A stretch of 36,651 nucleotides of DNA from assembly GCF_001194135.2 (NCBI RefSeq), contig NC_068987.1, positions 96,088,126-96,124,776 on the forward strand, given 5' to 3'. The DNA is from Octopus bimaculoides (lineage: Eukaryota). The notes beneath the pieces were generated by a model. That model worked only from the letters and a program-made list of their open reading frames with translations, made no database searches and was not told the DNA's origin. The position numbers were made by a program, and so were the translations under genes. Of the stretch, positions 2,776 to 36,651 are shown piece by piece (within the stretch, counting starts at the first letter, position 1; each line of letters opens with the position of its first letter).

Positions 2776-5412
2776 ACTGAACTGGACGCTGATGGCCTAT
2801 CTAACCCATGCCAGCATGGAAATGAGCATAAAATGGTATATAATCTATATCTGTTACTGTAACTTGTCCAGGTCTCAGAACTGTATAGATTAGCCAATAC
2901 ATCACAAGTTGTACTTCCAGTAAAACTAGTTACAAATTTACAGTGGTGGGGCTGAAAAGTTTCTGGCTTCGGGTAAAAGAAAATACAAGAGAATCAGTTA
3001 ATTATGATTTTATTCAACATATTCCCCTCACAAATTCACACACTTATTGCAGTGATCCTTCAGTTTTTCTAAGCCCTGTAATGAGTTGGACCTGGTTGGA
3101 GGTCCAACTCATTAAGGTTGGACCTCTAACCAGGTTTTTCGCAATACCCTTAAAGCCAGAAACTTTTCAGCACCTCTTTGTATATCTTTACATACATTAT
3201 ATTTGTTATTATTATATATGTTCCATACTCAACTGAGCACTCAATCCACTCTGTAGAGTAGTTTGCATTAGGAAGAGTATCCAGCCATAAAAGCCATGCC
3301 AAAACAGACAGTGGAACCTGGTGCAGTCTTCTGGCTTGCCAGCTCCTATCAAACCATCCAGCCCATACCAGTATGGAAAATGGAGACTAAATGATGATGA
3401 TGCTCCATCTTACAAGACTACTGACCTCATTCCGTTACTTGTCTCATACAAAAATAAATTACTTCTTATGCTTATAAATTTCCCATTATTCGTGTTAACC
3501 ATCTGTAATTGTATAATGACTTTTTCAAAGCTATTTCAGACTAATATAGATTTGGTGATAAAATCACTACTAGTATATCTTTCATGTATTAGATTTTTAT
3601 TGAATGGAAAGTAAAGTGAACTGGCTCAAATGATTCTCTCACAGCCATTTAACTTAAACAGAGTAGGATATAAAATCTTTCTCAACAAATGCCTTACATT
3701 TTGTTTCAAGGAGGAAAACCTGATTTGTTTTCTAAGCACCAAAATTTGGAGGGTGGAGACTTGTTATCACCAACGTTTTAAGATAACATGCCCCTACCCT
3801 CCCACCTACTAAAGGATGTTGATCCAGTAGGTGAGGCTCTGTGAAATTCTTTTATTCATGTTAGAAAAAGTAGCCACAACTAACTCAAACCACACTCTAT
3901 TTTCTTACAAAAGGACTTATTGGATAATAATAAAAAAGAAATCTAAGTCCTGTGGTTGGATTTTGAGTCCAGTCCCACAAAATCCTTGAGTAAGTGTTTT
4001 TTGACTATAGCCCTGGGCTGACCAAGGTTTTGTAAGTAAATTTGTTTAATAAAAAGTACGTGGAAACCAGTCGTGTGTGTGTCTGTCTCTTTGCTTTGTA
4101 CTATTTGGCAACTAGTGTTGGTTTGTTTATGTTCCTGTAACTTAGCAGCTTAACAAAGTGACAATAGAATAATTACCTGACTTCAAAGATAAAGTTCTGG
4201 CATTTTATTTTACTTACCTTGGAATATTGAAAGACAAAAGACCTGAGTGAGATTTGAAATCGGCACTCAAAGAGACNNNNNNNNNNCTGTCTCTTTGCTT
4301 TGTACTATTTGGCAACTAGTGTTGGTTTGTTTATGTTCCTGTAACTTAGCAGCTTAACAAAGTGACAATAGAATAATTACCTGACTTCAAAGATAAAGTT
4401 CTGGCATTTTATTTTACTTACCTTGGAATATTGAAAGACAAAAGACCTGAGTGAGATTTGAAATCGGCACTCAAAGAGACAAAACTGGTACTGCTAGTTA
4501 TTTCATTTGACACTCTACCGATTATGCCACTCCCTAAGAAAAGAAGTCACAGAAATGTTCTATAAGAAAACAGGGGATTTGTGTTTTGTTTTGCTTTGTA
4601 TGTGTTTGTGTGTTCAAAATGTAAAAGTTATTTCCTGAATGTCCTAGCTTATTTACATTTCAAAAAGTATAGTTTGCTGCGTTCTTTTTTGGTGACAAAG
4701 AAATTTTGACTTTGTGTTCTTCATTGAGTGAGTATTTGATTAGTAAACCAAGAAAAGTCTGTTCAGAAGGATTTTATTGTTGGGGTTTTTATTTTCTTCC
4801 CCCCTCTCCCCTCTTTTTCGACTGTTTGCTTTTTGCACGTGGACACTACACGTGGCCATCATGATAACTCATCATCAGCAATATCACCATCATCATCATA
4901 AATTAGTTAATATTTTGTTTGTAATATAGTGGAAGAAACACTAATGAGTGGATTTGGTAGACGGAAACTGAAAGAAGCCCATCATATTTATGTATATATA
5001 TATGTATGTGTCTATATGTTTGTGTGTCTGTATTTGCCCCCCCCCCCTCCAACATCGCTTGACAACCGATGCTGATGTGTTTACGTCCCCGTTACTTAGC
5101 GGTTCGGCAAAAGAGATCGATACAATAAGTACTAGGCTTCCAAAGAATAAGTCCTGGGGTCGATTTGCTCGACTAAAGGCGGTGCTCCAGCATGGCCACA
5201 GTCAAATGACTGAAACAAGTAAAAGAGTAAAGAGTAGAACAACAGGTTAAATGCTTCGCAGTTTTTATTTACATTACATACCTTTGTGTTCTGAAATCAA
5301 TCAAATCCTGCCAAGTTCTGTTTCACCTTTCATCTATTTGGAGAAAGAATTACATAACTGTATCCTCCTCCAAAAGTTTTGGATGTGTTCACCATCATCA
5401 TCATCATATATA

Positions 5413-5795
5413 TAAGTAAGATCGTTGCCAGTGCCCCTGGACTGGTTCTTGTGCGGGTGGCACATGAGATGCACCATTTTGAGCGTGGCCGTTGCCAGTA
5501 CCGCCTGACTGGCTCCTGTAGGATTTTCGAGCGAGATCGTTGCCAGTGCCCCTGGACTGGCTTGTGCGGGTGGCACATAAAAGACACCATTTCGAGCGTG
5601 GCCGTTTTCGTGCGGGTGACACGTAAAAGCACCCACTACACTCTCTGAGTGGTTGGCGTTAGGAAGGGCATCCAGCTGTAGAAACTCTGCCAAATTAGAT
5701 TGGAGCCTGGTGTTGCCATCCGGTTTCACCAGTCCTCAGTCAAATCGTCCAACCCATGCTAGCATGGAAAGCGGACGTTAAACGATGATGATGAT
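5413..5795 (+). mobile_element. Young RTE LINE 3' UTR (5'-truncated at the ORF stop)
   Basis: Near-identical to 27268-27647 (-), where it directly follows an RTE ORF end; ends ...CGGACGTTAAAC(GAT)n. Confidence 0.85.
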
Positions 5796-7167: not shown

Positions 7168-7728
7168 CGGATCTTTTTTAAAACGGGGGCCACATTTTTC
7201 ATTAATGTTTTACGTAGTGTTTTTGGTACGGAAAGACTTTCAAACTTCGTATACTTATCTATTTTGTGTTATAGAACAGAAAAATATTTTTGTATTCGAA
7301 TTTATTTCATGTAAAAAATTGTGTTATTTCGATAATTTCAACCAATCACTGACGTCCATTCAGCCGATATACATTAAGTGCCGACTACATAAACAAACGA
7401 TTCTTCGTTTTATTTGCTTTTTTCATTTTAAATTTGCTTTAACCCTAATCCTAACCCTAACCCTAACCTTAGGGTTAGGGTTAGGGTTAATTGTTTCAGA
7501 ATCGTTTGTTTATGTAGTCGGCACTTAATGTATATCGGCTGAATGGACGTCAGTGATTGGTTGAAATTACAGAAATACGACAACTTTAACATGGAATAAT
7601 TTATGGATTTCTTTTTTTTTAAGAAGACTAAGAGAAAAAGATGTTTTATATGACACATTCTACCAGTGTTCCAAGTTTCAAAGTGTTTCGTTAATGAAAA
7701 ATGTGGCCCCCGTTTTAAAAAAGATCCG
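7168..7728. mobile_element. 561-bp fold-back MITE with telomeric (CCCTAA)/(TTAGGG) core
   Basis: Perfect 38-bp TIRs (7168-7205 / 7691-7728); 6-bp TSD AAATAT (7162-7167 / 7729-7734); perfect 72-bp inner inverted arms (7333-7404 / 7498-7569). Confidence 0.92.
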
Positions 7729-8186
7729 AAATATCATGCATAATATACAACGTAATAATTACATTTGCATTATATATGTAATAATTCAATTGTATGTTAT
7801 GTACTTTATTGTGTTTTGTCATGTGTGTGATCCCCTAGTCTATGGAAAAATTGTCTTGCATGAAAGCAGTTCATGATGCAGAAAAGACTGAGGACCACTG
7901 CAGTATAACATGGAATAGAAATTGTAAAAATGGTGTTGGTCTGGTTTCAAAGCAGTCTATTTTTTATCACTTAATCAGAGCATAAATATCAGTGTCTGAC
8001 TCTTTTCAGAGTCTCCAAGGCTGGTTGAAGGAAGGGAAAAAGTTATCCTCTAACCAGATACTTGTTCTGAATGCTTGTTACATAGATGTTGCAAAAAACA
8101 ACCAGGGGTCAGGTGGGGCTATTAAATTGAGCAATAGACTAATTTTATAGCCAAGCAATTTTTTTTTCTTAAAATATCCCATACGT

Positions 8187-8525
8187 TTGTTTTTTATATG
8201 GAACACAGAACGGAGAATAGGAATCTTGCTAGAACTGACAGTACCATGGGAAGAAAACATCGACAATGCAGAGAAACGAAAGGAGAAGAGATACGATAAA
8301 CTAATCGAAGAGTGCAGAGAACAGGGATGGACTGTCGAGTACTACCATCTGGCAGTGGGGGCTAGAGGCTTCATTGAAAGAAAAATGACAACGCTATTCA
8401 AGAGAAGATTTGCATTTTCAAGCTCGGAACTGTGAAAACTGATAAGGAGGATACAATAGGCGGTCGAAAAAGCCAGCTTCTATATATGGCTGAAGCGGGA
8501 AGACCAAATATGGCTTGAAAGTCAT
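8187..8525 (+). mobile_element. 5'-truncated RLE non-LTR retrotransposon (HERO/NeSL-like), endonuclease C-terminus
   Basis: IW...ILLELTVPWEENIDNAEKRKEKRYDKLIEECREQGW...VGARGF...AVEKASFYIWLKRE matches the PD-(D/E)xK restriction-like endonuclease tail; two in-frame stops. Confidence 0.85.
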
Positions 8526-9225
8526 AACATGCCTAGGTGAGACAGGCTGACACTGAAGTGGCTTCGTGCCCTCCATTGTCAGTTAAAGTTTAGACAGTGT
8601 CATGTGACAACTTGCTGGGGCTACTTGCTGGAGCCTAGCAGCGGGAAGTTTAGACAGTGTCACATGACAACTTGCTGGGGCAGCCTGCTGGAGCCTAACA
8701 GCAGGTATAAAAAGGGAAATTTGACATGACAATCATTCGGACGCTGACACTCGTTGATGCTGCATCAAAGAGGCCAGGGAATAGAAGAAAGAAGACGTGC
8801 ACCCAACACCAGAGCTGAAGACACCTCCGAAAGGAGGGGCCCCGCCACGTCAAAACGGTATAGGAGTAGGGGCCGAAACCGGACGTGGTTCCTCCTGATG
8901 ATGTCTTGAGCTAACTGGATCCTATAAAGGAGCTGTTGTGGTAGCAGACCATGAAACATGGTTGAAATTCCTGNNNNNNNNNNAACCATAGCGAGGGACA
9001 TTCCACAGTTGAATTAGAACAGTCACAAACAGTGAAAGAAGACATGCACCCAACACCAGAGCTGAAGACACCTCCGAAAGGAGGGGCCCCGCCACGTCAA
9101 AACGGTATAGGAGTAGGGGCCGAAACCGGACGTGGTTCCTCCTGATGATGTCTTGAGCTAACTGGATCCTATAAAGGAGCTGTTGTGGTAGCAGACCATG
9201 AAACATGGTTGAAATTCCTGTCTAA
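8526..9225 (+). mobile_element. GC-richer putative 3' UTR of the HERO-like element
   Basis: Follows the RLE stop; contains a 60-bp tandem duplication (8586/8646), several hairpins and a duplicated 187-bp terminal module; composition reverts to AT-rich after ~9225. Confidence 0.55.
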
Positions 9226-10558: not shown

Positions 10559-11459
10559 CAAGGTGGTATCCTATAGTTCCCAGACTAGTTCTGTAGAGTG
10601 CCAACAGATGGCAGTACATGCTTGCATACACAGTGAGCACCAGCGTTGACCGTCATGAGGTAGTGTGCCAAGTGATATCACTGTGTTTACTTCACAAGTT
10701 GTGGAATTTGTGTTTATCTGATCATGTGCATGCTGTAGTCTGCAATTTTGTTATAGTCAGGAACAAAGAGCCAGTGTGAAATTTTGCATTAAACTTGGGA
10801 AGTCTGCTACAGGGACATTGATCATGCTTCAGCAAGCTTACAGTGACAAGGCAATGGGTTGTACACAATGTTTCAAGTGGTATGGACACTTCAGAAGCTG
10901 AAAAACATCCCTAGAAGATGAGCGATCAGGAAGACTTGTCACAAGCATCACCCTTGGAAATGTGGTATTGTGCCTCGAGAATTTGTCCTCCTAGGGCCAG
11001 ACTGTCAACTAAGAAAGAGTTCTCCTGTGATGTTTTGAAACATTTGAGGGAGGGCATTCAGTGAAAGTGACTGGATCTGTAGAGTGCAAAGAATCGGATT
11101 TTTTACTGAGCTCTCCTCACCTGTGAGCTTCTTGCCATAAACAACATGGTATCACTTCTACACTCACTCAATTCCCCAGATCTAGCACCTGTAGACTTCC
11201 ATCTCTTCCTCAAGATGAAAATGCAGCTCAAAGGTTACCATCGTAATACCATTGTCGAGATCCAGAGCGAATTGCAGAAGGTCCTTGACTCGCTTACAGA
11301 AAATTACTTTCAGGCTGGATTTCGAAAGTGGCAGGAATGCTGGGACCAGTATATTGCTGCACAAGGTGACTATTTCAAAGGAGATGATTTTGAAACTTAG
11401 GTAAATAAGTTATTTTTTATTAAACATAAGTAGTCTGGGAACCTTTTGATAACACCTTG
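10559..11459 (+). mobile_element. Internally deleted mariner element (901 bp, pseudogenised transposase)
   Basis: TA TSDs (10557-58, 11460-61); imperfect ~30-bp TIRs CAAGGTG...TTCCCAGACTA; EQRASVKFCIKLGKSAT (HTH), RSGR, GIVxxEF..GQTVN and NSPDLAPVDFHLF (YSPDLAPxD) motifs with stops and frameshifts. Confidence 0.9.
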
Positions 11460-11589: not shown

Positions 11590-11635
<46 letters not shown>

Positions 11636-12107
11636 NNNNNNNNNNNNNNNNNNNNNNNNNNNNNNNNNNNNNNNNNNNNNNNNNNNNNNNNNNNNNNNNN
11701 NNNNNNNNNNNNNNNNNNNNNNNNNNNNNNNNNNNNNNNNNNNNNNNNNNNNNNNNNNNNNNNNNNNNNNNNNNNNNNNNNNNNNNNNNNNNNNNNNNNN
11801 NNNNNNNNNNNNNNNNNNNNNNNNNNNNNNNNNNNNNNNNNNNNNNNNNNNNNNNNNNNNNNNNNNNNNNNNNNNNNNNNNNNNNNNNNNNNNNNNNNNN
11901 NNNNNNNNNNNNNNNNNNNNNNNNNNNNNNNNNNNNNNNNNNNNNNNNNNNNNNNNNNNNNNNNNNNNNNNNNNNNNNNNNNNNNNNNNNNNNNNNNNNN
12001 NNNNNNNNNNNNNNNNNNNNNNNNNNNNNNNNNNNNNNNNNNNNNNNNNNNNNNNNNNNNNNNNNNNNNNNNNNNNNNNNNNNNNNNNNNNNNNNNNNNN
12101 NNNNNNN

Positions 12108-12152
<45 letters not shown>
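11590..12152. repeat. (TA)n microsatellite spanning an assembly gap
   Basis: TA runs on both sides of a ~470-N gap. Confidence 0.9.
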
Positions 12153-12154
<2 letters not shown>

Positions 12155-12739
12155 TGCCAGTGGCACATAAAAGCACCCATTACACTCTCGGATTGGTTGG
12201 CATTAGGAAGGACATCTAGCTGTAGAAACCATGCCAAATCATACTAGAGTCTGGTGCAGCCCCTCAGCTTATCAGCCCTGGTGAAACTGTCCAACCCAAG
12301 CTAGCATAGACAACAACAGACAGTAAATGATCATGATATATATACATATATATATATATGCAATGAGCTTTTTTTAAGTTTCTGTCTACCAAATCCACTC
12401 ACAAGACTTTTGTTGACCTGGGGCTATATTAGAAGATACTTGCCAAAGGTGCCATGCTGTGGAATGAACCTGAATTTTGAAACATTTTGTTATTCTTTTG
12501 TTGTCATATTGAATATTACACACACACACTCTCTCTCTCTCTCACACACACACACGCACACACACACGCAGTTCATAGTCTCTGTTTATCTCCTTCCTGT
12601 TATCTGACATATTGTCTAGCCTCACTGCTTATTATATTTTCCATTTAAACAACATATACATACACCTACTGACAAACACATATACACACAGTGTATAGCA
12701 ATGAAAATTAAAGTTATCTTTCAGAGTTAACAGTCTGGA

Positions 12740-13432
12740 AGCATTTTGTTAAACTCCCTTCACCTGATTACTGATATTCCACTAGTTCTTCATTAATAGT
12801 ACAAAATCCTGTGGTGTACTCATATAAACTGTTCACTGACATTATATATATATATGTCACTCTACTTAATCATTGACATTGTAATCATTTGCTGAACCCT
12901 TTTAGGGTAGATATATATTAGTGACAGAAGCAGTGTTAATACTGAGCTGAACTATCTATCTCCACTTAAACATGGATGTTCCTTTAGAACAAACTATACT
13001 GAAGTAGTTACCATGAGAGAAACCCCCATATTGGTTTTTGGTGCAGAATGCATGCATGTTTATATCTCTAATGAGGAGATAAATCTCTGCCATCTCCAGC
13101 ACTGAGACCACCAAATCACATGATTTCGACCTTCCCAGGTCTCATCAGTGATGGACACTCGACTGCTAGAGATAGCAGTGACTCATTTCCCCGCACCACC
13201 AATGATATATAGAAAAACAGTGCCAGAACAGTCACTGGTGTCACGATTAGCCAGTGAACTTGTTAAGAAATATATATTAGTGACATGTGCAGTATTAATA
13301 CTGAGTGGTAATATTTATCCCCACTTAAATGTGGTTGTTCTGTTAGAACAAACTATACAGTGGTAGATACCATAAGAGAACCTCTCATATTGGCTTTTGG
13401 TGCAAAAAGTACACTTGCTTATATCGCTATAC
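12740..13432 (-). mobile_element. Diverged ~350-360 bp tandem repeat with hammerhead motifs (candidate non-LTR retrozyme)
   Basis: 12911-13068 aligns with 13270-13430 (offset 359, roughly 75% by eye); hammerhead core at 13142-13148 has a decayed counterpart at 12790-12796 (offset 352). Confidence 0.65.
13087..13178 (-). ncRNA. Type I hammerhead ribozyme
   Basis: Minus strand: CCAUCA-CUGAUGA-GACC(UGGGAA)GGUC-GAAA-UCAUGUGA-U-U/UGGUGG. Stem I 6 bp, stem II 4 bp, invariant core intact; stem I is extended by a 3-bp and a 15-bp helix (13164-13178 with 13087-13101). Confidence 0.88.
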
Positions 13433-13719
13433 TGTATTTTAGGTGGCATTATGTTGTATCTTTTATCATTTATCTTTCACTTGTTTGAAACATTTGACTG
13501 CGACCATGCTCGGGCACCATCTTCAAGAGTTTTAGTCAAACAAATTTACCCCAGGACTTATTTTTTCAAGCCTAGTACTTACTATCAGTTCATTTTGCTG
13601 AACTGCTAGCAATATAAGCAAGTGTGCATTTTGCACTAAAATCCAATACAAGGGTTTTTTTCATGGTATCTACCACAGTATAATTAAACTAATCCGCCTG
13701 TATTTTCTCTTACCCAAAG

Positions 13720-13747
13720 CCAAAAACTTTTCAGCACCCCCTTATAG
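13720..13747 (+). other. Possible 28-nt micro-exon
   Basis: CTAAT branch-like motif, pyrimidine tract and AAG acceptor upstream; strong donor AG|GTAAGC at 13748. Splice signals only. Confidence 0.15.
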
Positions 13748-14149
13748 GTAAGCTGAGTCATTGAGAATCACTATTGTGGCTATGGACATGTGAACATGAA
13801 GGTGAAGTGATCTTTAACCATTATCAAGTTACCTTTTTTTCCTTGAGAGTTGTCTCTGCCAAAGTGTTGCACTATTCATTCCAAATATCAAAAAAAATTA
13901 GTATAAAAAGAAATCAACTGTGGCTTATAACATTGCCTGAACCCATGGCAAGTTAAGCAATCTAAAGTGAGGACTTGGTGCTTGCTCTTCCCACTTTCAG
14001 AAGCTATGAAGGCCTGTCTTACTATTTACTTAAAATATGACACTATTTGATGACATGGATGTTTGTTATTGTAGTCTGTATTATTATTCTTTTTTCACCA
14101 AATATTTATTTTGTATTGTATCATCATTACTAAGGCTGGTGATTATGTT

Positions 14150-14575
14150 GCAATAATGGCGATGGTGTGGTGGTGTTACATGTGATTATGATGCTTGTAA
14201 TTGTAGCCGGTGATGTAGTTAGGGTGTGAAAGTGGTGGTGGTGGTGGTGGTGATGGTGGTGGTAGTGGTGGTGATGGTGGTATTGGTGGTGGTGGTGGTG
14301 GTGGTGGTGGTGGTGGTGGTACTGGTGGTGGTGGCAGTGGTGGTGCTGGTGCTGGTGGTATTGGTGGTGGTGCTGGTGGCGGTGGTGGTGCTGGTGGTAC
14401 TGGTGGTGGTGGCAGTGGTGGTAATAGTAGTGGTGGTGGATTTGAATGTATCTGGTCATTGTGGTGATGATACTAGTGGTACATGTGATCAAAATGATTG
14501 TAAATATAGGAGGTAGTGGTGGTGGGGTTACAGTTGTTATGATAGCCATGGTGATAGTGGTGAAGCTTGTGGTTG
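14150..14575. repeat. (GGT)n-rich degenerate microsatellite
   Basis: Long GGT/GCT/GAT array; source of the poly-V and poly-H ORFs. Confidence 0.9.
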
Positions 14576-14902
14576 TTGCATACATATGAAGGAAGAGAGA
14601 CATTTTGCTTCACATGATGTTCTCACTCCCACCATCAGTTCTCCCCCTTCAGCTCTGAGACTGGTGATTTCTTTGGTCTACTTGCTTCCTTCTTTGGAAT
14701 GTCTCTTTCTGGTCACGTTTCTGGCTGGGATTTTATTGTATGTGGCATTATTCTGTTTTTTCTTCTCCTTCACCACTTCCCCTTCTTTATATGCTTCCCC
14801 CCTTTTTGTCCCTTACTACCTCTGCTTCCTCCTTCTCCTCTTTTTTATCTTCCTCTTCCCCTTCTGTCTTCATTACCATCATGATCATCATTAATAACCA
14901 TT

Positions 14903-14939
14903 ATAGTAGTAGTAGTAGTAGTGATAGTAATAGTTGTAA

Positions 14940-14989
<50 letters not shown>

Positions 14990-15030
14990 TGATAGTGATG
15001 ATGGCAACAACAACAACAACAATAATAATA
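14903..15030. repeat. (AGT)n then (CAA/AAT)n microsatellites
   Basis: Directly visible tandem triplets. Confidence 0.9.
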
Positions 15031-15475
15031 ATACTGTACGACATCTTCAATAATAAGAATAATAATTGTTTGTTTCTTCTGTGGAAACAAAGGATCTTAA
15101 AGGAAGGCAAAACACACACACACACACACCTTGATAAGTGGTCACGTTTTTTAAGAAGTCTGACCATGTGTACAGCAGTTATGACCTTACCTGCCTGTAC
15201 TTGTTTCTTTCATTTATTACCTTTTCCATGACACTTCACTTTACTTTCCTTAAATTTCCCCACCCTAACATGGGAGAAGGGCAAAGATATTGCAAACAAC
15301 TCTAATTTATTTTTTTCTACTCTAGACACAAGGCCCAAAATTTTTGGGGCAGGGGGTCAGTCGATTAGATCGACATCAGCATGCAACTGGTACTCAATTT
15401 ATCGACCCTGAAAGGATGAAAGGCAAAGTCAACCTCGACAGCATTTGAATTCAGAACATAAAGACAGACAAAATA

Positions 15476-15709
15476 CCTATTTCGTTATTGCCCACAAGGG
15501 GCTAAACATAGAGGGAACAAACAAGAACAGACGAACGGATTAAGTCGATTACATCGACCCCAGTGCGTAACTGGTACTTAATTTATCGACCCCGAAAGGA
15601 TGAAAGGCAAAGTCGACCTCGGCGGAATTTGAACTCAGAACGTAACGGCAGACGAAATACCGCTAAGCATTTTGCCCGGCGTGCTAACGATTCTGCCAGC
15701 TCGCCGCCT
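15476..15709 (-). mobile_element. tRNA-derived SINE, family A, young copy
   Basis: Reverse complement of the 221-452 family with CpGs retained (GAGTTCAAATTCCGCCGAGGTCGAC). Confidence 0.88.
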
Positions 15710-15734
15710 CACAACTCTAATTTATTATGATTGT

Positions 15735-16139
15735 TGTTGAGGCAGCAAGTTAGCTGAATCGTTACTGTGCCAGGCTGAATAATTAATGGCATTCTTTCTG
15801 ACTTTGTGTTCTGAGTTTGAATGCTGCCTAGGTTGACTTTGCCCTTCATCCTTTCTGAGTCAATAAAATAAGTACCAGTTGAGTACTGGGGTCAACAGAA
15901 TCAACTTACCTCTCCCCCGAAATTGCTGACCTTGTGCCAAAATTTGTAACCATTATCAAGGCAGTGAATTGGCAGAACCTTTAGCATGCCAGGGAAAATG
16001 CTTAGCAGCATTTCATCCATCTTTACATTCTGAGTTCAAATTCTGCCAAGACCAACTCTGCCTTACATCCTTTCAGGGTTGGTGTAATCAACTAGTCCCC
16101 TCCCCCAAAATTTCAGGCCTTGTGCCTTTAGTAGAAAGG

Positions 16140-16174
<35 letters not shown>

Positions 16175-16390
16175 GGTGACGAGCTGGCAGAATTGTTAAC
16201 ACACTAGATGAAATGCTTTGCAGTATTTAACCTGTCACTACATTCTGAGTTCAAATTCTGCCAAGATCAACTCTGCCTTTCATCCTTTCAGGATCGATAA
16301 ATTAAGTACGAAAGGAACTCTGGGGTCGATGTAATCAACTAGTCCCCCTCCTTCAAAATTTCAGACCTTGTGCCTTTAGTAGAAAGGATT
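15735..16390 (+). mobile_element. Head-to-tail stack of three family A-related SINEs
   Basis: Three repeats of head/GAGTT(C/T)AAAT/CATCCTTTC core and GTGCC tail at ~15735, ~15958, ~16172, with an (ATT)n linker. Confidence 0.75.
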
Positions 16391-16444
16391 ATTTTTATTG
16401 TTATTGTACATTTCTCATCTGAGGGCTCTTTATTTCACTTGCTC

Positions 16445-16700
16445 TTTTTAATTGGCTGATCCTGTAAGAACAGACAAGCTCTTTCCACAACACTTTCCAT
16501 GACACCTAACATGTCTCAAAATCCCAGCTGTCCTCGATAGGGCGGTTTTCAGAGCATATTTTATACTCACGTCAATCCCAATTTCTCCAACTAATTTCTG
16601 ATTGTTAATGTTCCTAATGCCCCAACAACTACTAGGATAACAGTTACTTTCTTCATTGTCCACATTCATGCAATCTCATCTTTTAGGAGCTTGTACTTTT
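16445..16700 (-). mobile_element. R4/Dong-like RLE non-LTR retrotransposon 3' fragment
   Basis: Across frameshifts reads KYK.L..EI..MWTMKKVTVILVVVGALGT and LKTALSRTAGILRHV, matching the R4-clade C-terminal VIPVVVGALG and QKTALLGTARILR motifs. Confidence 0.7.
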
Positions 16701-16750
<50 letters not shown>

Positions 16751-16937
16751 TAAGGTGGCGAGCTGGCAGAATCATTAACATACTGGACAAAATGCTTTGC
16801 GGTATTTCACCCATCGCTATGTTCTGGGTTCAAATTCCGCCGAAGTCAACTTTACCTTTTATCCTTTCAGGGTCAATAAATTAAGTATCAGTGAAACACT
16901 CAGGTCAATGTAATCAACTAGTCCCTGCCCCATAAAT

Positions 16938-17034
16938 ATTAACAATCAGAAATTAGTTGGAGAAATTAGGATTGACGTGAGTATAGAATATGCTCTGAAA
17001 ACTGCTTTATCAAGGACAGCGGGGATTTTGAGAC
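16938..17034 (+). repeat. Inverted copy of part of the R4-like fragment
   Basis: 97-bp reverse complement of 16513-16609, about 90% identical by eye. Confidence 0.85.
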
Positions 17035-17629
17035 TGCTAAATTGAATACTTAATGCAAAACCACCACCTTATGTTTGGTTTTTCATCCTTGGTACTATCT
17101 CTAACATCTTGGGATTTTAGTGATTGATAAAAGAAATAATTATCATTATTAATATTAATAGCATTGTTATGGCGCTGGAAGACAGAATCAGTAGTGAACA
17201 AATAAAAATGGTATTTTATTTAGTTACGCCCCTTTGTGTTCTAAAGTTTAAATCTTGATAGGGGTCAGCTTTCTGTTTTGTTATTCGGGAGTGGATAAAA
17301 TATGTACCAACCTGATACTGGGACCAGTTTAAGCAACTGCCTGTTCCCGCCCTTTGTGTATAAATATGGGATAAATATATATATAAGATAAAAATAATTA
17401 AATGTTAAAAATAGTGCAATTCTTAACTGTTAGAAAATGAAAGTAGGGTCTTGAAGTTTTCATGTAGAAAAGTCTTCAAGATATTTACAGTTTCAAGTAT
17501 TGCAGTGTTTTCAGGAACTGAGTATAATGTTCAAATTACTAAGCAGTATCACAGCTATTAGTCTTCCCTCTGTATTCTTGAAAAAACCAAAAGAGATATT
17601 TTGAATGAAGTAAATCTCTTGCATTGGCA

Positions 17630-17830
17630 AAATTCCAAGTGTTATGTGAACTTAGGAAATTACCAAGCTCTTGGTTTCTCTTTTCAACCAATTTCAGGGT
17701 ATATCTGTTTTGAGATCTGTAATACTTCCAAATTGCCTACAAGCTGGTGTATTTTCTTAATATCTCCATTCTTAAAATGCTCTGTATCCCAACTTATTCT
17801 TAGTATTACGCTAAGCTACTGTGACATATT
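17630..17830 (-). mobile_element. Old LINE C-terminal remnant
   Basis: VILRISWDTEHFKNGDI resembles the LINE post-RT ILRISWxxHxxNxxV motif. Confidence 0.35.
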
Positions 17831-18799
17831 GAAAGTGACAGTTTTTCATAAAATTCTTAAGAACAGAAATCTGATGTTTCAAGCTATTTTTATTTATTTA
17901 TTTTTTTTTTCTAGGAAAGAAGTACAAAAATTTATGAGATTTGTTTTTTTAACTATTTGAATCTTTTTTTTACACAGCAAACTACAAATTTATTCTTCCT
18001 GAATAGTTTTAATTTTCTAAAAATATCAGGGAAAGGTATTTGTGGTTTCCAGGTATATTAAACACATGTAAGCCAATGAGGAAGTATCTATACCATTGTT
18101 TAACCTGTTGAAAATACCAGCCAAATTTTCCTCAAATCAAAACAATTGTCTTGAATTAGAAAGGGCATATTAAATAATGTAGCACTAGATGTCACTAAAA
18201 GAAAAATAGGATGAAATACTTTTGATCGTAGGTTTTCTCAGTCACAGCTGAATTGGAGCTAAGCTGTAACAAAATTAACTGTCAAATATTCATTGGTTTT
18301 ACAAACCAGCAAATGCTCAATACAATCTACTGCTACACCTGAGTCCTGACAAACTTTTAAAAGTTGGTGTTTTGCTTTGATTATATAGTATTAAGCTGAT
18401 GAGGGGAGAATCTCTTGACAGGATGCCCATGCTTGTAAATGACCAGCATATTGTTTAGGAAAAGATTTTTTACTCATCTGCTTAGCACCATGGAATTTCA
18501 ATTCCAGATAGGGCAGGGACTCAGAATCATGGCCAACAGCTTAGGTGGTTGTGTTATAAGTGCTGTATAATCCTGTATCTTTTCTATGAACTTGAGCAGG
18601 TGTCTTCTATAGCTCTGGACATTGTATGGACCTTGAGCAAGTATCTTCTGTAGCTCTGGGCCAACCAAAGACTTTTGAATCAATTTGGTAGTCAAAAACT
18701 GAAAAAAACCTGGGTGTCTTTCTCTGTGTGCGTGTGTATGTGTGTGAGAGAGAGAGAGAGAAATGAGGAAGGCTGCATAAAGAAGTACTAAGCGTTAAT

Positions 18800-19457: not shown

Positions 19458-19479
19458 TATATAATATATTCCTGTGCTG

Positions 19480-19712
19480 GTGGCACGTAAAATACACCAT
19501 TTTGAGTGTGGCCGTTGCCAGTACTGCCTGACTGGCCTTCGTGCCAGTGGCACGTAAAAGCATCCACTATAACTCTCAGAGTGGTTGGTGTTAGGAAGGG
19601 CATCTAGCTGTAGAATCTCTGCCAAATCAGATTGGAGTCTGGTGTAGCCATCTGGTTCACCAGTCCTCAGTCAAATTGTCCAACCCATGCTAACATGGAA
19701 AGCGGACATTAA
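19480..19712 (+). mobile_element. RTE 3' UTR copy
   Basis: Homologous to 5560-5795; (GAT)n tail. Confidence 0.8.
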
Positions 19713-20188
19713 ACGATGATGATGATGATGTATATAGTTGTGTGTTTGTGTCTGTGTTTGTCCCCCCACCATCACTTGACAACCAATGTTGATGTGTTTA
19801 CATCCCCGTAACTTAGTGGTTCGGCATAAGAGATTGATAGAATAAGTACCAGGCTTACAAAAAATAAGTCCAGTGGTCAATTTCTTCGACTAAAAGGCAG
19901 TGCTCCAGCATGACCACAGTCAAAATGATTGAAACAAGTAAAAGAATATATATATGTTAGTGTGTGTGTAATGTACCTTTGCCAAGTCATCACATGATGG
20001 TTGTGAATAAGCAAAATCATACAAGCAAGGTTATTGATTTTCTATTTCCTGTGGAAAATGTGTCTAGCCATGGAGAGATATCAGATAAAGTTGGCAACAG
20101 GAAGGGCATCTGGTCATAGAAAATCTGTGTCAACAAATTCTATGTGACTCATGCAAGCATGGAAAAGTAGGCATTAAATGATAATGAA

Positions 20189-21101: not shown

Positions 21102-22389
21102 TTAAGAATATCTTCCCCTTTCCCTCCCTCCACTAGTCTTAGAGGCTCTGCAAAATGTCATGGACTATAAGATAAAAAATAGTAAGGTATTGTACTAATG
21201 TTACGCATGCATGATTATTTAATTAAACAGATTTACATATTGGTCTCAAATTTTGGTACAAGACCAGCAATGTCTGTGTTTGTCCCCCCAACATCACTTG
21301 ACAATCGATGCTGGTGTGTTTATGTCCCCGTAACTTAGTGGTTCGGCAAAAGAAACCGATAGAATAAGTACTAGGCTTCTAAAGAATAAGTCCTGGGGTT
21401 GATTTGCTCAACTAAAGGTGGTGCTCCAGCATGGCCACAGTCAAAAGACTGAAACAAGTAAAAGAGTAAAAAGTAACCCCGAAAGGATGAAAGGGAAAAT
21501 AGACTACATCGAAATTTGAACTTAGAATGTAAAGATGGATGAAATGCCACTAAGCATTTTATCTGGTATGCTAACAATTCTGCCAGCTTGCTACCCTAAA
21601 TATAAAAAGAGTTATATATTAAAAGTGCATTATGTGTACACATAATTCACTTCTGGTTGACCCAGTACGACCTACTTTATCTATCAGTATGGCAAGCATT
21701 TGACTTAACTCCTATGAGGATTTTGAATCCCTTTTATATTTTCTAATTATAATTTCTAATCACTCAAACTTAAGCTAGATTCATATGTTCTGACAATGAC
21801 TTTCATACACTTTGAATTGCACAATGATAACAACTGCTGTGTGTATATATGTAGGTGGGGAGCTGTGTGTTTAGAAAGAAATAATTAGGTTAATTACAGG
21901 TTAATGTACTTCAGTGGTTCTCAACCATTTCTATCACAACAACACGCTCTTTTCGTCCAATGTTGTTTTACAGACACCTTCATGTGTTTTGATTTGGAAA
22001 ATAAATTATCTTAATCAAACAGAGACTAATTTTGTGCAGTGGTTTATTATCTATATTCCCTTATACTTTTCCATCCAGCATGCTCTGCTTTTTAAATATT
22101 TGCTTAGACCAGTGACAATGTTAAATTTTCATAGAAATTGCTAAAGAAGTTAAGGTCTTAGAAAACAAAATTATAAAAGTACCCGGTACATGCTGTAAAG
22201 TGGTTAGCATTAGGAAGGATATCCCACCATACAAACCATACCAAAGCAGACATTGCAGTCCTTAGACTCATCAGATCTTGTCAAAACTGACCAATCCATG
22301 CCAGCATGGAACATAGATGTTAAAAGATAATGATACTGGACCTTGGTGCATCATCAAACATGTTTCTACAACAAGGATTAATTTATTGA

Positions 22390-24229: not shown

Positions 24230-24930
24230 TGGCTTCAAATTTTGGCACAAGGTCAGCAATTTTAGGGGAGGGATAACTCAATTACAATATTACATCAACC
24301 CCAGTGTTTAACTGGTACTTATTTTATCAACCTTGAAAAGATGAAAGGCAAAGTTGACCTCAGCAGAATTTGAACTCACAGCACAAAGACATGAAATGCC
24401 GCTAAGTATTTTTGCTCAGTGTGCTAATGATTCTGCGAGCTTGCTGCGCCTACACACACGTACATATTGGTTTGAAATTCTGGCTCAAGGCCAGCAATGT
24501 CAGGGAGGGGCTAAGTTGATTGCATCAACCCCACTCCTCAACAGGTACTTATTTTATCAACCCGACCCAAAGGATGAAGGGTAAAGTTGACCTCTGTGGA
24601 ATTTTGAACTCACAATATAAAGACGGGTGAAATGCTGGTAAGCATTTTACCTGCTGTCCTAACGATTTTGCCAGCTAACAATTCTGCCAGCTCACCATCT
24701 TACATACACGTACATGTTCTTTTCTACTCTAAGCACAAGGCTGAAATTTTGGAGGAGGGGGCCAGTCGATTAGATCGATCACAGTAAGCAACTGGTACTT
24801 AATCTATTGACTCCGAAAGGATGAAAGGCAAAGTTGACCTCTGCGGAATTTGAACCCAACGTAAAAACAGATGAAATACCACTAAGCATTTCGCCTGGCA
24901 TGCTAACGACTCTACCAGCTTGCCACCTTA
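24230..24930 (-). mobile_element. Head-to-tail stack of three family A-related SINEs
   Basis: Three ~230-bp units, each with GAAAGG(C/T)AAAGTTGACCTC and ending at an ACACACAC/GTACAT linker. Confidence 0.75.
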
Positions 24931-26634: not shown

Positions 26635-27035
26635 TACATCATCATCATTTAACGTCCATTGTCCATACTGGCATGGATTGGATGGTTTGACTGGGCCAGC
26701 ATGCTGGAAGGCTGCACCAGGCTCCAGTCTGATTCGGCATGGTTTTCTACAGCTAGATGCCTTTCCTAACGCCAACCACTCCGAGAGTGTAGTGAGTGCT
26801 TTTACATGCCACCAGCACAGGTTCCATTTGCGTGACGCTGGGATGCATTTATGTGCCAATTTGTGTGACACCAGTATTTTCCACGGTTGTGATTTTGCTC
26901 GGCTTGATGGGTCTTCTTCTCAAGCATAACATAATGCCAAAGGTCTTGAGCATTGCTTCTGTGAGGCCCAACACTCGAAAGGAACTCGGCCACTTTGCCT
27001 CCATGAGGCCTACATGCTTCTTTATTGGTTAATAG
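26635..27035 (-). mobile_element. RTE LINE 3' end, older subfamily
   Basis: VGPHR/LGLTEAM...LWHYVMLEKKTHQAE remnant followed by the RTE UTR and (GAT)n. Confidence 0.7.
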
Positions 27036-27267: not shown

Positions 27268-27792
27268 ATCATCATCGTTTAACGTCCGCTTTCCATGCTA
27301 GCATGGGTTGGACGATTTGACTGAGGACTGGTGAAACCGGATGGCAACACCAGGCTCCAATCTAATTTGGCAGAGTTTCTACAGCTGGATGCCCTTCCTA
27401 ACGCCAACCACTCAGAGAGTGTAGTGGGTGCTTTTACGTGTCACCCGCACGAAAACGGCCACGCTCGAAATAGTGTCTTTTATGTGCCACCCGCACAAGC
27501 CAGTCCAGGGGCACTGGCAACGATCTCACTCGAAAATCCTACGGGAGCCAGTCAGGCGGTACTGGCAACGGCCACGCTCAAAATGGTGCATCTCATGTGC
27601 CACCCGCACAAGAGCCAGTTCAGGGGCACTGGCAACGATCTTACTTGGCTTGCCGGGTCTTCTCACGCACAGCACATTTCCAAAGGTCTCGGTCAGTAGT
27701 CATCGCCTCGGTGAGGCCCAATGTACGAAGGTCTTGCCTCACCACCTCAGCCCAGGTCTTCCTGGGCCTACCTCTTCCACGGGTTGTCATGG
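27268..27792 (-). mobile_element. Young RTE LINE 3' end with intact ORF terminus
   Basis: TTRGRGRPRKTWAEVVRQDLRTLGLTEAMTTDRDLWKCAVREKTRQAK* (stop 27641-27643), then ~370-bp UTR and (GAT)n. Confidence 0.9.
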
Positions 27793-27820
27793 AAAATTGA
27801 ATGTTAAATAATTATTTTTG

Positions 27821-28500: not shown

Positions 28501-29900
28501 AATCATTAGCACACTGGGCAAAATGCTTAGTAGTATTCCATCCATCTTCATGTACTTTTAGTTGAAAGGACCATTATTACTGCTATTATTAGTAAGCAGA
28601 TGACTATGCCATCTGCTTACTAAAAATTATCCAGCCGACATTCATAAAAATGGTACTGATCCTACCTGTCACTTTTGAGGTACAATCAGAGAAACAACTG
28701 ACCATTTCATCTCTGGATGCTCTATGTTAGCTTCAACTGTGTATACTTATGCCATGATAGACTTGGTTGGTATTTATGCTAGATCATATGCCATCAGTTT
28801 GCACTACGAGAAGAATTGGTGGGAACCAAAGTTTGCCATAGTAGTAGAAAATAAAGACATAACTATACTTTGGAGATGGCACAGAAGCGTAAATATGATA
28901 TCAAGGCCAACCGGAGTGTGGTATGGAAGAATGTGCTGGCAGGAATGGTTGAAATGAAGGATTTGTGAATGTTTGTTGGAAAAAAATATAATTAAAAAGT
29001 TCTGATGCTCTGTGAGAACTAGAATGTAAGGAGTGGTGTGCAAAATGAAGGCAGACTGTGTAATAGTCAGTGATGAGTGTTGAGAAGTGGTGAAGAGGGT
29101 CGCAGATAAATATGGAACAGTAATAGGTACTATATTTATGAAAACGAAAAATATGATCATATATATATATATATATGTATGCATACACTCACCCTTCCAC
29201 ACATACACATGCACACACACACACACACACATACACATTTACATATAGTTTGATTATATACACACATATACATTCAAAATACATACATGCACGTACACAC
29301 AAACAAATACATATCTGCATATACACATATACAGAAATTTCTTTCATAAGGACATCCATGTATGTGGTGGTGGGGTATACAGTTCTTAAATTATAAGCTT
29401 CACTGGGAAAAGTAAACAAATGGAAATACATTTTTATATTTCTCTGAACAGAAAAATGCTGGAATTGTTCTTGCTAATTAGTTTCATTTTATTCATCAGA
29501 AAAACAACTATTATCTTCAGTCTACAAAGAGATTGATTGCTGTTAAGCTCGTTATATCAAACACAAACCAAGTCTCAGTTGAATTCATCATCATCGTTTA
29601 ATGTCTAGCTTTCATGCTGATATGGGTAGGACAGTTTGATAGGGTCTGACAATTTGGAGGGCTGCATCATACTTCAATGTCTATTTTGGCATAGTTTCTA
29701 TGGCTGGATGCCCTTCCTCATTCCATCCATTTTTACAGAGTGTACTGGGTCCTTTTTTTCATGATACCAGCATGAGTGATAATTGTCTTCTAACATGCAA
29801 GGCTAAAGGCCTAAAGTGGCCCCTATAACAGAGAGAACAGAAGTGAAAGTAGGTGATGATTCTAAGCAAAGGGCTAAAGGAAGTTCAGTAAGGTGCATGT

Positions 29901-30147: not shown

Positions 30148-30322
30148 TCATCATCGTCGTCGTTTAACGTCCACTTTCCATGCTAGCATGGTTTGGACGA
30201 TTTGACTGAGGACTGGTGAAACCGGATGGTAACACCAGGCTCCAATCTGATTTGGCAGAGTTTCTACAGCTGGATGCCCTTCCTAACGCCAACCACTCAG
30301 AGAGTGTAGTGGGTGCTTTTAC
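30148..30322 (-). mobile_element. Short 5'-truncated young RTE 3' UTR
   Basis: Near-identical to 27268-27435. Confidence 0.85.
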
Positions 30323-30920
30323 TTTGATATGTGATAGAAATTGGAGTGAATTGTGAGGCTGTGGTGGGGTATGTACATTTATTGTTCTTGTTACAGCTAG
30401 GTGAAAAGGAGCTGGCAGAGAGTTAGATGTCTTAGTCGTACACACTGTACAGTGTGTATGTGTTGATGATGTTATATGTTTTCTTCAGGTATCTTATGTA
30501 TGTTTGTAGACACTGTGCAATGCATGTATGTGTACACACACACAGTTTTCATGTAGATAAGCATACACATACACTAGAACACCTTCTGAATTAAGGATTC
30601 TTTCCTTGATAGTCCACTCTATTGATTTGCTTGCATTTACAGCTGTCAATCTCTATGCCATTTGTAGATTATCTTGTCTGTAGGTTCTTCAACACCTCAC
30701 TCAAGCAGAAACTATCTCTGTGAGTTTCAACTGCAGTTTAGGGAAGTTCCAGAAAAGTGAATTGACAGGGATTATATTGTCATCATCTTGTAGGTTCAAG
30801 ATTTTGATGGTGTGAATGTTTATTTTTAAAATCACAATGTAGGGTAGATGTGAGAGGTAAGATCTGGTTCGTTTGAAAAGAAAACAGGTGGATGATTTGG
30901 GCCAGATATAGCTAGTTCAA

Positions 30921-36351: not shown

Positions 36352-36651
36352 CATCATCGTTTAACGTCCGCTTTCCATGCTAGCATGGGTTGGACGATTT
36401 GACTGAGGACTGGTGAAACCGGATGGCAACACCAGGCTCCAGTCCGATTTGGCAGAGTTTCTACAGCTGGATGCCCTTCCTAACGCCAACCACTCAGAGA
36501 GTGTAGTGGGTGCTTTTACGTGTCACCCGCACGAAAACGGCCACGCTCGAAATGGTGTCTTTTATGTGCCACCCGCACAAGCCAGTCCAGGGGCACTGGC
36601 AACGATCTCGCTCGAAAATCCTACAGGAGCCAGTCAGGCGGTACTGGCAAC
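36352..36651 (-). mobile_element. Young RTE 3' UTR, runs off the window end
   Basis: Near-identical to 27268-27570 and to the reverse complement of 5495-5795. Confidence 0.88.

Follow-up and report, generated by a model that had tools for sequence, protein, structure and literature searches.

A complete type I hammerhead ribozyme motif lies within a non-coding repeat of 359-bp period in the genome of Octopus bimaculoides, and we hold with high confidence that both the motif and the repeat are real. They were found in a stretch of 36,651 nucleotides of contig NC_068987.1, referred to here as the window. In the sense of the hammerhead, the locus reads R2–S–R1, that is, a 160-bp repeat, a segment that carries the ribozyme and a second copy of the repeat, which together make about 1.45 units with one ribozyme, accompanied by an inverted fragment (R3) of the same repeat (Table 1). 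Most likely, this partial tandem would derive from a known kind of small circular-RNA retroelement, which it would extend to the octopus; that the locus is a relic of a non-LTR retrozyme family is the reading towards which we lean, with somewhat more confidence than doubt.

Table 1. Features of the hammerhead locus, in coordinates of the window
Feature	Position	Strand	Basis or remark
Type I hammerhead ribozyme core	13108..13154	-	Descriptor scan, Rfam Hammerhead_HH9 alignment and sequence reading
Long hairpin with the hammerhead at its tip	13054..13223	-	Constrained fold and pair list
Segment S, 199 bp, non-repeated, flanked by R1 and R2; holds the hammerhead and the larger part of the hairpin	13071..13269	-	GC 0.46
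Repeat R1, 160 bp, downstream of S in the hammerhead sense	12911..13070	-	
Repeat R2, 160 bp, upstream of S in the hammerhead sense	13270..13429	-	Element ends at 13429
Repeat R3, inverted partial copy, unit positions 1-79 in the hammerhead sense	13607..13685	+	nhmmer E = 1e-22
SINE-like repeat, 5'-truncated, not part of the element	13455..13611	-	Aligns with four other copies in the window
Putative decayed hammerhead of the first-pass annotation, weak resemblance to the intact one	12759..12803	-	Judged not demonstrably homologous

The hammerhead motif and its hairpin

Read on the minus strand from 13154 to 13108, the sequence CCAUCA-CUGAUGA-GACCUGGGAAGGUC-GAAA-UCAUGUGAU-U-UGGUGG is a complete type I hammerhead. 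Helix I consists of six base pairs between CCAUCA (13154-13149) and UGGUGG (13113-13108), helix II of 4-5 bp, GACC(U)/(A)GGUC, with the loop GGGA/UGGGAA (13141-13128), and helix III of 3 bp, AUC/GAU (A15.1-U16.1 and two more pairs), with an AUGU loop (13124-13115). The CUGAUGA core box occupies 13148→13142 and the GAAA 13127→13124, and H17 is an unpaired U at 13114, with cleavage predicted between 13114 and 13113. The conserved core (C3 U4 G5 A6 N7 G8 A9; G12 A13 A14; A15.1-U16.1; H17 not G) is complete, and three helices are present, of which helix I is open. With G·U pairs counted, we read the AUCAUGUGAU of helix III as self-complementary.

The intact core that the first-pass annotation had reported is confirmed as a type I hammerhead on the minus strand and as the sole match in the window: a structural descriptor of the hammerhead, run on both strands, returned this one site (13154→13108), and the same descriptor found nothing in 2000 first-order Markov replicas of the window, on which count a chance origin was rejected. 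Other matches to CUGANGA…GAAA in the window were discarded for lack of helices. No hammerhead family of Rfam matched anywhere in the window at its gathering threshold. When the motif only was searched, Rfam Hammerhead_HH9 aligned in this type I register too, every one of its pairs being standard; the score of 20.6 bits is below the cut-off of 52. A search of the wider region in E-value mode gave an alignment to the type III hammerhead (16.6 bits vs a cut-off of 48.5), which we rejected, as helix I would not close beside the core; the tight region gave the type I register.

A minus-strand transcript of the locus would, judging from its letters, cleave itself between 13114 and 13113. The cleavage triplet is AUU (H17 = U); the NUH rule admits a U at H17, although such sites are uncommon and cleave slowly in vitro. 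The hammerhead may therefore already be impaired by its AUU site, possibly through C-to-T decay.

In the constrained fold, helix I extends well beyond its six core pairs into a nearly unbroken duplex of ~55 bp, in which 13054-13106 pairs with 13158-13223, giving a hairpin of 170 nt. On the minus strand this hairpin folds at -73.7 kcal/mol (z = -5.9), compared with -48.8 kcal/mol (z = -4.0) on the plus strand, a difference of 25 kcal/mol in favour of the hammerhead strand. The minus-strand RNA folds so much better because about 10 pairs of the extended helix I are G·U, and the structure therefore belongs to the ribozyme-strand RNA and is more than a plain inverted repeat in DNA. The 359-nt unit S+R1, circularly permuted to start at the cleavage site, has a circular fold of -111 kcal/mol (z = -4.4).

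Repeats, edges and surroundings of the locus

The direct repeats 359 bp apart had been noticed in the first pass, and they hold with slightly refined boundaries (R1 and R2 in Table 1): the two copies align without gaps over 160 nt at 80% identity (BLAST E = 6e-37), and the identity is even along their length, with 14-17 matches per 20 nt. We rejected an assembly artefact as the source of this pair, given the 80% identity and the lack of an N run between the copies. The inverted third copy, R3, had been missed. It is 79 nt long, 82% identical to the corresponding part of R2 (13351-13429) and 78% identical to R1, and it stands head to head with R2 in the hammerhead sense, 177 nt away; the interval is made up of ~25 nt of unassigned sequence and the 5'-truncated SINE-like repeat. 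All three copies stop at one and the same nucleotide of the unit (13070, 13429 and 13607). The first 17 nt of R1 in the hammerhead sense form the outer 3' arm of the hairpin, and the common end of the R copies lies 17 nt inside that arm.

Segment S had no match in the window apart from itself, and neither R nor S had a further copy in the remaining 35 kb, so that the three R copies all sit at one locus, within 800 bp. A weak nhmmer match to the R profile at 24357-24422 (E = 0.008, 10.9 bits) is either a very old fourth fragment or chance.

The unit has a GC content of 0.41. It had been described as free of ORFs, terminal inverted repeats and a tRNA head; this stands for coding capacity and for the tRNA, since no ORF longer than 72 aa (the 72-aa ORF being without homologues) and no tRNA were found in the unit, but the extended helix I is itself a long inverted repeat within the unit. 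Similarly, a SINE near 13460 had been said to cut the unit off. A SINE-like repeat is indeed present there, but it does not truncate the unit, as R2 ends ~25 nt before the SINE tail.

A candidate target-site duplication was noted at the edges, with its left copy, TTTTAGGGTAG, at 12901..12910 and its partner, TTTTAGGTGG, at 13438-13447, 8 nt past the end of R2. The 20-nt flanks of 12911 and 13429 have the 7-mer TTTTAGG in common, and a shared word of such length occurs in 2.6% of control flank pairs. From its letters, this 7-mer could be a target-site duplication, in which case the element would have its left edge at 12911.

The neighbourhood is rich in other repeats. The SINE-like repeat next to the locus has its tail on the 13455 side and meets R3, at the truncated end, in a TA overlap. 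It belongs to a family with five copies in 36 kb, the other four being at 1356-1467, 5097-5231, 19819-19945 and 21341-21470; the copies are 73-77% identical and have AAGTAAA-type tails (reported by TRF beside the other copies), and ARAGORN detected a tRNA-like head in none of them. The far side of R3 abuts a fragment (13690-13746) of a MITE-like palindrome found at 2945-3182, whose arms carry AAGCCAGAAACTTTTCAGCAC. A remnant of a mariner/Mos1-type transposase lies on the plus strand at 10722-11397 (HTH_48 E = 1e-5, with a C-terminal DDE-like piece). About 800 bp to the left of the hammerhead locus there is an assembly gap of 472 N at 11636-12107 (region 11591-12152), with (TA)22 on both sides.

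Two further direct repeats surround runs of 10 N, one of 204 bp at 4083-4480 with two 100% identical copies (N run 4277-4286) and one at 8780-9200 with an offset of 247 bp (N run 8974-8983); both look like unmerged contig ends, that is, assembly artefacts. An abundant interspersed repeat with the open frame FLQLDALPNANHSESVVGAFTCHPH… recurs at 5330-5735, 12151-12310, 19470-19700, 26700-26930, 27320-27700, 30210-30350 and 36400-36651, and it is built into Octopus bimaculoides gene models (SRPK-like kinase, PARN, THOC5 and others) at 94-100% identity, where it is probably exonised or mis-annotated repeat sequence. At 7440-7489, 4.8 copies of TAACCC are followed directly by 3.5 copies of TTAGGG, a back-to-back interstitial telomere-like repeat. 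Open frames that resemble transposable element proteins were seen at 8151-8432 (ELTVPWEENIDNAEKRK…), 27644-27811 on the minus strand (RGRPRKTWAEVVRQDL…) and 28679-28954 (ETTDHFISGCSMLA…); Pfam recognises none of the three, and the last two resemble the C-termini of LINE ORF2.

Origin of the locus

Non-LTR retrozymes consist of tandem units that are non-coding, low in GC and 150-450 bp long, those of Mytilus having 350-390 bp (PMC7229834), and the canonical metazoan type I hammerhead, as defined in PMC4209133, is a motif that has been assigned to them (PMC7229834). The octopus hammerhead is of this canonical, non-minimal type, with its helix I of 6 bp that leads into an internal loop, helix II of 4-5 bp and short helix III with a small loop. 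The 359-bp period falls inside the retrozyme size range and near that of the Mytilus units, and the GC content of the unit is below the 45-50% limit given for retrozymes, which, like the unit, have no ORF, LTR, PBS or PPT. The self-pairing that characterises retrozymes was recovered by folding, both for the circular unit (z = -4.4) and for the hairpin (z = -5.9). Of the tandem organisation with one hammerhead per unit, what is seen here is the 359-bp period set by R1 and R2, over ~1.45 units with a single hammerhead. Penelope-like elements, which co-occur with retrozymes, are present at the level of the host genus, as O. vulgaris has 31 recently active families (PMC13282606), and none was found in the window. 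What speaks against a retrozyme is that the element is known from one locus, that this has a single hammerhead which reaches no Rfam gathering score, and that the cleavage triplet is AUU.

After transcription, retrozyme RNA is cut at one site in each unit and closed into circles, which Penelope-like enzymes are believed to copy back (PMC7229834). For the octopus element, tandem units would have been transcribed into multimeric RNA, which the type I hammerhead would cut once per unit; a host ligase would circularise the monomers and a Penelope-like reverse transcriptase would copy the circles back into DNA. The partial tandem and the inverted, head-to-head R3 could then result from reverse transcription of a circular or multimeric template, and a tandem with an inverted copy is an insertion pattern described for Penelope-type machinery (PMC8557442). 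The common end of the R copies could mark where the enzyme stopped or stalled at the base of the 55-bp hairpin; such stalling, which we infer from the position of the ends, may have taken place, but identical ends are equally expected of a plus-sense retroposon whose 3' end is fixed. The locus as it stands has one ribozyme and therefore cannot release a unit-length monomer, and we read it as an offspring copy rather than a source.

The first-pass annotation went further in reading the locus as a relic dimer of a retrozyme family, in which a decayed hammerhead would mark the second unit. A canonical type I hammerhead in a non-coding repeat of 359-bp period agrees with the family assignment, but ~1.45 units with one hammerhead do not make a dimer, and we consider it unlikely that two full 350-360-bp units were present of which the left hammerhead (12803→12759) has decayed beyond function. 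The letters on which this rested do exist, TCATTAA being found at 12790-12796, 352 bp from the intact core. Moreover, 12759-12803 can be aligned with the hammerhead, colinearly and 354-356 bp away, and the best local alignment there scores 13 against a genomic null of 7.7 ± 1.5 (a score reached by 19 of the 1526 null segments, or 1.2%), and the score of a permissive alignment of 12724-12906 with 13076-13267 is reached by 2.3% of the null. However, across the tests applied (local alignment under four scoring schemes, diagonal word counts, nhmmer and folding) the outcomes were weak or negative. A search with S by nhmmer --max over 12700-12910 returned nothing even at E ≤ 10; the 6-mer matches on the expected diagonal to the left of R1 were TATATA only; and the monomer implied by the dimer reading, 12755-13113, is no more stable when folded than its shuffles (z = 0.04). 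The even 80% identity across R drops at once to the background level of 32-42% just left of 12911, and therefore does not fit a single tandem that decayed evenly in place, and the candidate target-site duplication abuts that same position. Homology of the decayed hammerhead is thus not demonstrated by nhmmer, by the diagonal 6-mers or by identity, and we treat both it and a second full unit as unsupported.

The remaining alternatives concern the kind of element rather than the number of units. The terminal repeats of Penelope-like elements themselves contain type I hammerheads, and insertions of these elements take the form of partial tandems accompanied by truncated, inverted copies. Recent Penelope insertions number in the hundreds in Octopus, a relationship between retrozymes and pLTRs is known from Xenopus, and a 472-bp gap lies ~800 bp to the left, so that the locus might be a fragment of the pLTR of an autonomous element whose ORF was lost or lies beyond the gap at 11636-12107. 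We find this improbable: metazoan Penelope hammerheads are minimal, whereas the octopus motif does have a helix III, with 4-5 bp in helix II and 6 bp in helix I; the hammerhead is in the non-repeated segment, outside the repeated arms; and a Pfam scan of six-frame pieces from 12153-18000 gave no RT or GIY-YIG signal, nor did inspection by eye alone reveal one in the ORF pieces from elsewhere in the window, of whose left side the gap hides a part. To much the same degree we doubt that the element was a SINE-like hammerhead retroposon moved by a LINE, which is how Sm-alpha of Schistosoma was first described, or a plus-sense retroposon with its fixed 3' end at the end of R, in which case 5' truncation would have produced R3, and two insertions placed head to tail would account for R1 and, after it, S+R2. 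The identical end of all three R copies would be a signature of target-primed reverse transcription, with variable 5' truncation giving lengths of 79, 160 and 359 nt, and R3 runs straight into the 5'-truncated end of a SINE, as is seen in template-switch chimeras; yet the hammerhead and the G·U-rich hairpin are on the strand opposite to that sense, the shared end has no A-rich or microsatellite tail, there is no tRNA-like head, and inspection revealed no convincing A or B boxes. Slightly less probable again is a local rearrangement, that is, a direct and an inverted duplication of a 160-bp piece around a single-copy hammerhead, either orphan or co-opted by the host like the intronic HH9 and HH10 of amniotes. 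All known R copies do lie within 800 bp, with none elsewhere in the 36 kb, and the best Rfam alignment is to the intronic HH9 model. But that match covers the generic core only, at 20.6 bits vs the cut-off of 52, the R copies are about equally diverged (78-82%) with a sharp common end, which suggests templated copies, and an extension of helix I by 55 bp is what rod-like mobile RNAs typically show.

Under the retrozyme reading that we prefer, relatives were sought beyond the window. The six-frame stop-to-stop translations of the unit, joined as one query, had no match at E ≤ 1 among 5.8 billion proteins, and pattern scans with the hammerhead and the conserved R block gave no relevant match in metagenome, viral and prokaryote contigs, a set without cephalopod genomes. 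Six viral contigs of IMG/VR (L001-L006) match a looser hammerhead pattern, CTGATGAGACC…GGTCGAAAT; these presumably reflect phage hammerheads or chance and have no relation to the octopus unit. In the literature searched, no paper was found that joins a hammerhead ribozyme with Octopus bimaculoides, and cephalopods are absent from the retrozyme papers found.

A bolder proposal, which we offer as speculation and consider rather doubtful, is that Octopus has an undescribed, transcribed hammerhead retrozyme family of ~359 nt, of which this locus is a dead copy and whose ribozyme caps a G·U-rich duplex of ~55 bp. Abundant circular double-stranded RNAs of this kind would be prime substrates or sponges for the exceptionally active ADAR editing of these animals, and the richness in G·U could possibly be a trace of edited RNAs that were copied back into DNA. 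If the family were found genome-wide, it would extend non-LTR retrozymes to cephalopods and supply a probe of 359 nt with which to look for circular RNAs made by ribozymes in animals of interest for their RNA biology, and the structure of the insertion, a partial tandem and an inverted copy that both end at the base of a hairpin, would hint at how a reverse transcriptase handles a structured circular template. The locus itself is non-functional and probably a relic of a class that is on record from molluscs and many further phyla, and by itself it opens no new question.

Comparison with known hammerhead elements

Retrozymes with type I hammerheads occur in cnidarians, molluscs (mussel), arthropods, flatworms, amphibians and fishes (PMC7229834; bioRxiv 10.64898/2026.07.22.740005). 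The first-pass annotation knew of none from octopods, and the novelty is weaker than this assumed, as the giant squid genome has 235 loci matching the Rfam Hammerhead_1 family (PMC6962438). Both cases are type I hammerheads in a cephalopod genome; however, the squid figure is a count from an Rfam scan, without unit structure, and the octopus motif is below every Rfam gathering score.

The minimal hammerheads of Penelope pLTRs (Cervera & de la Peña 2014, PMC4209133) share with the octopus locus the type I topology and the insertion as partial tandems with inverted copies. They differ in being without helix III and in having a helix II of 7-8 bp and a helix I of 4-5 bp, and they are found in both terminal repeats flanking an RT/GIY-YIG ORF, none of which applies to the octopus locus. 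Sm-alpha of Schistosoma resembles it as an element of ~335 nt with a canonical type I hammerhead, both tandem and dispersed, but has tRNA-like pol III boxes, none of which were seen in the octopus unit. In amphibians, newt satellite 2 and the axolotl Rtz_331 and Rtz_353 likewise combine a unit of 330-350 bp with a type I hammerhead whose short helix III bears a tetraloop with a sequence that allows a dimeric form; in contrast to the one octopus locus, arrays of the amphibian retrozymes can run to hundreds of copies, and a genome holds ~10^5 motifs.

The retrozymes of Mytilus galloprovincialis (Cervera & de la Peña 2020, PMC7229834) were compared with the octopus locus by architecture alone, and in this respect the octopus locus differs from them in its ~1.45 units with one ribozyme, its helix I of ~55 bp and its AUU triplet. 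What the two have in common is a canonical type I hammerhead in a non-coding, low-GC unit of ~360 bp in a mollusc, head-to-tail repetition, strongly self-paired RNA of the ribozyme strand and Penelope-like elements in the host genome.
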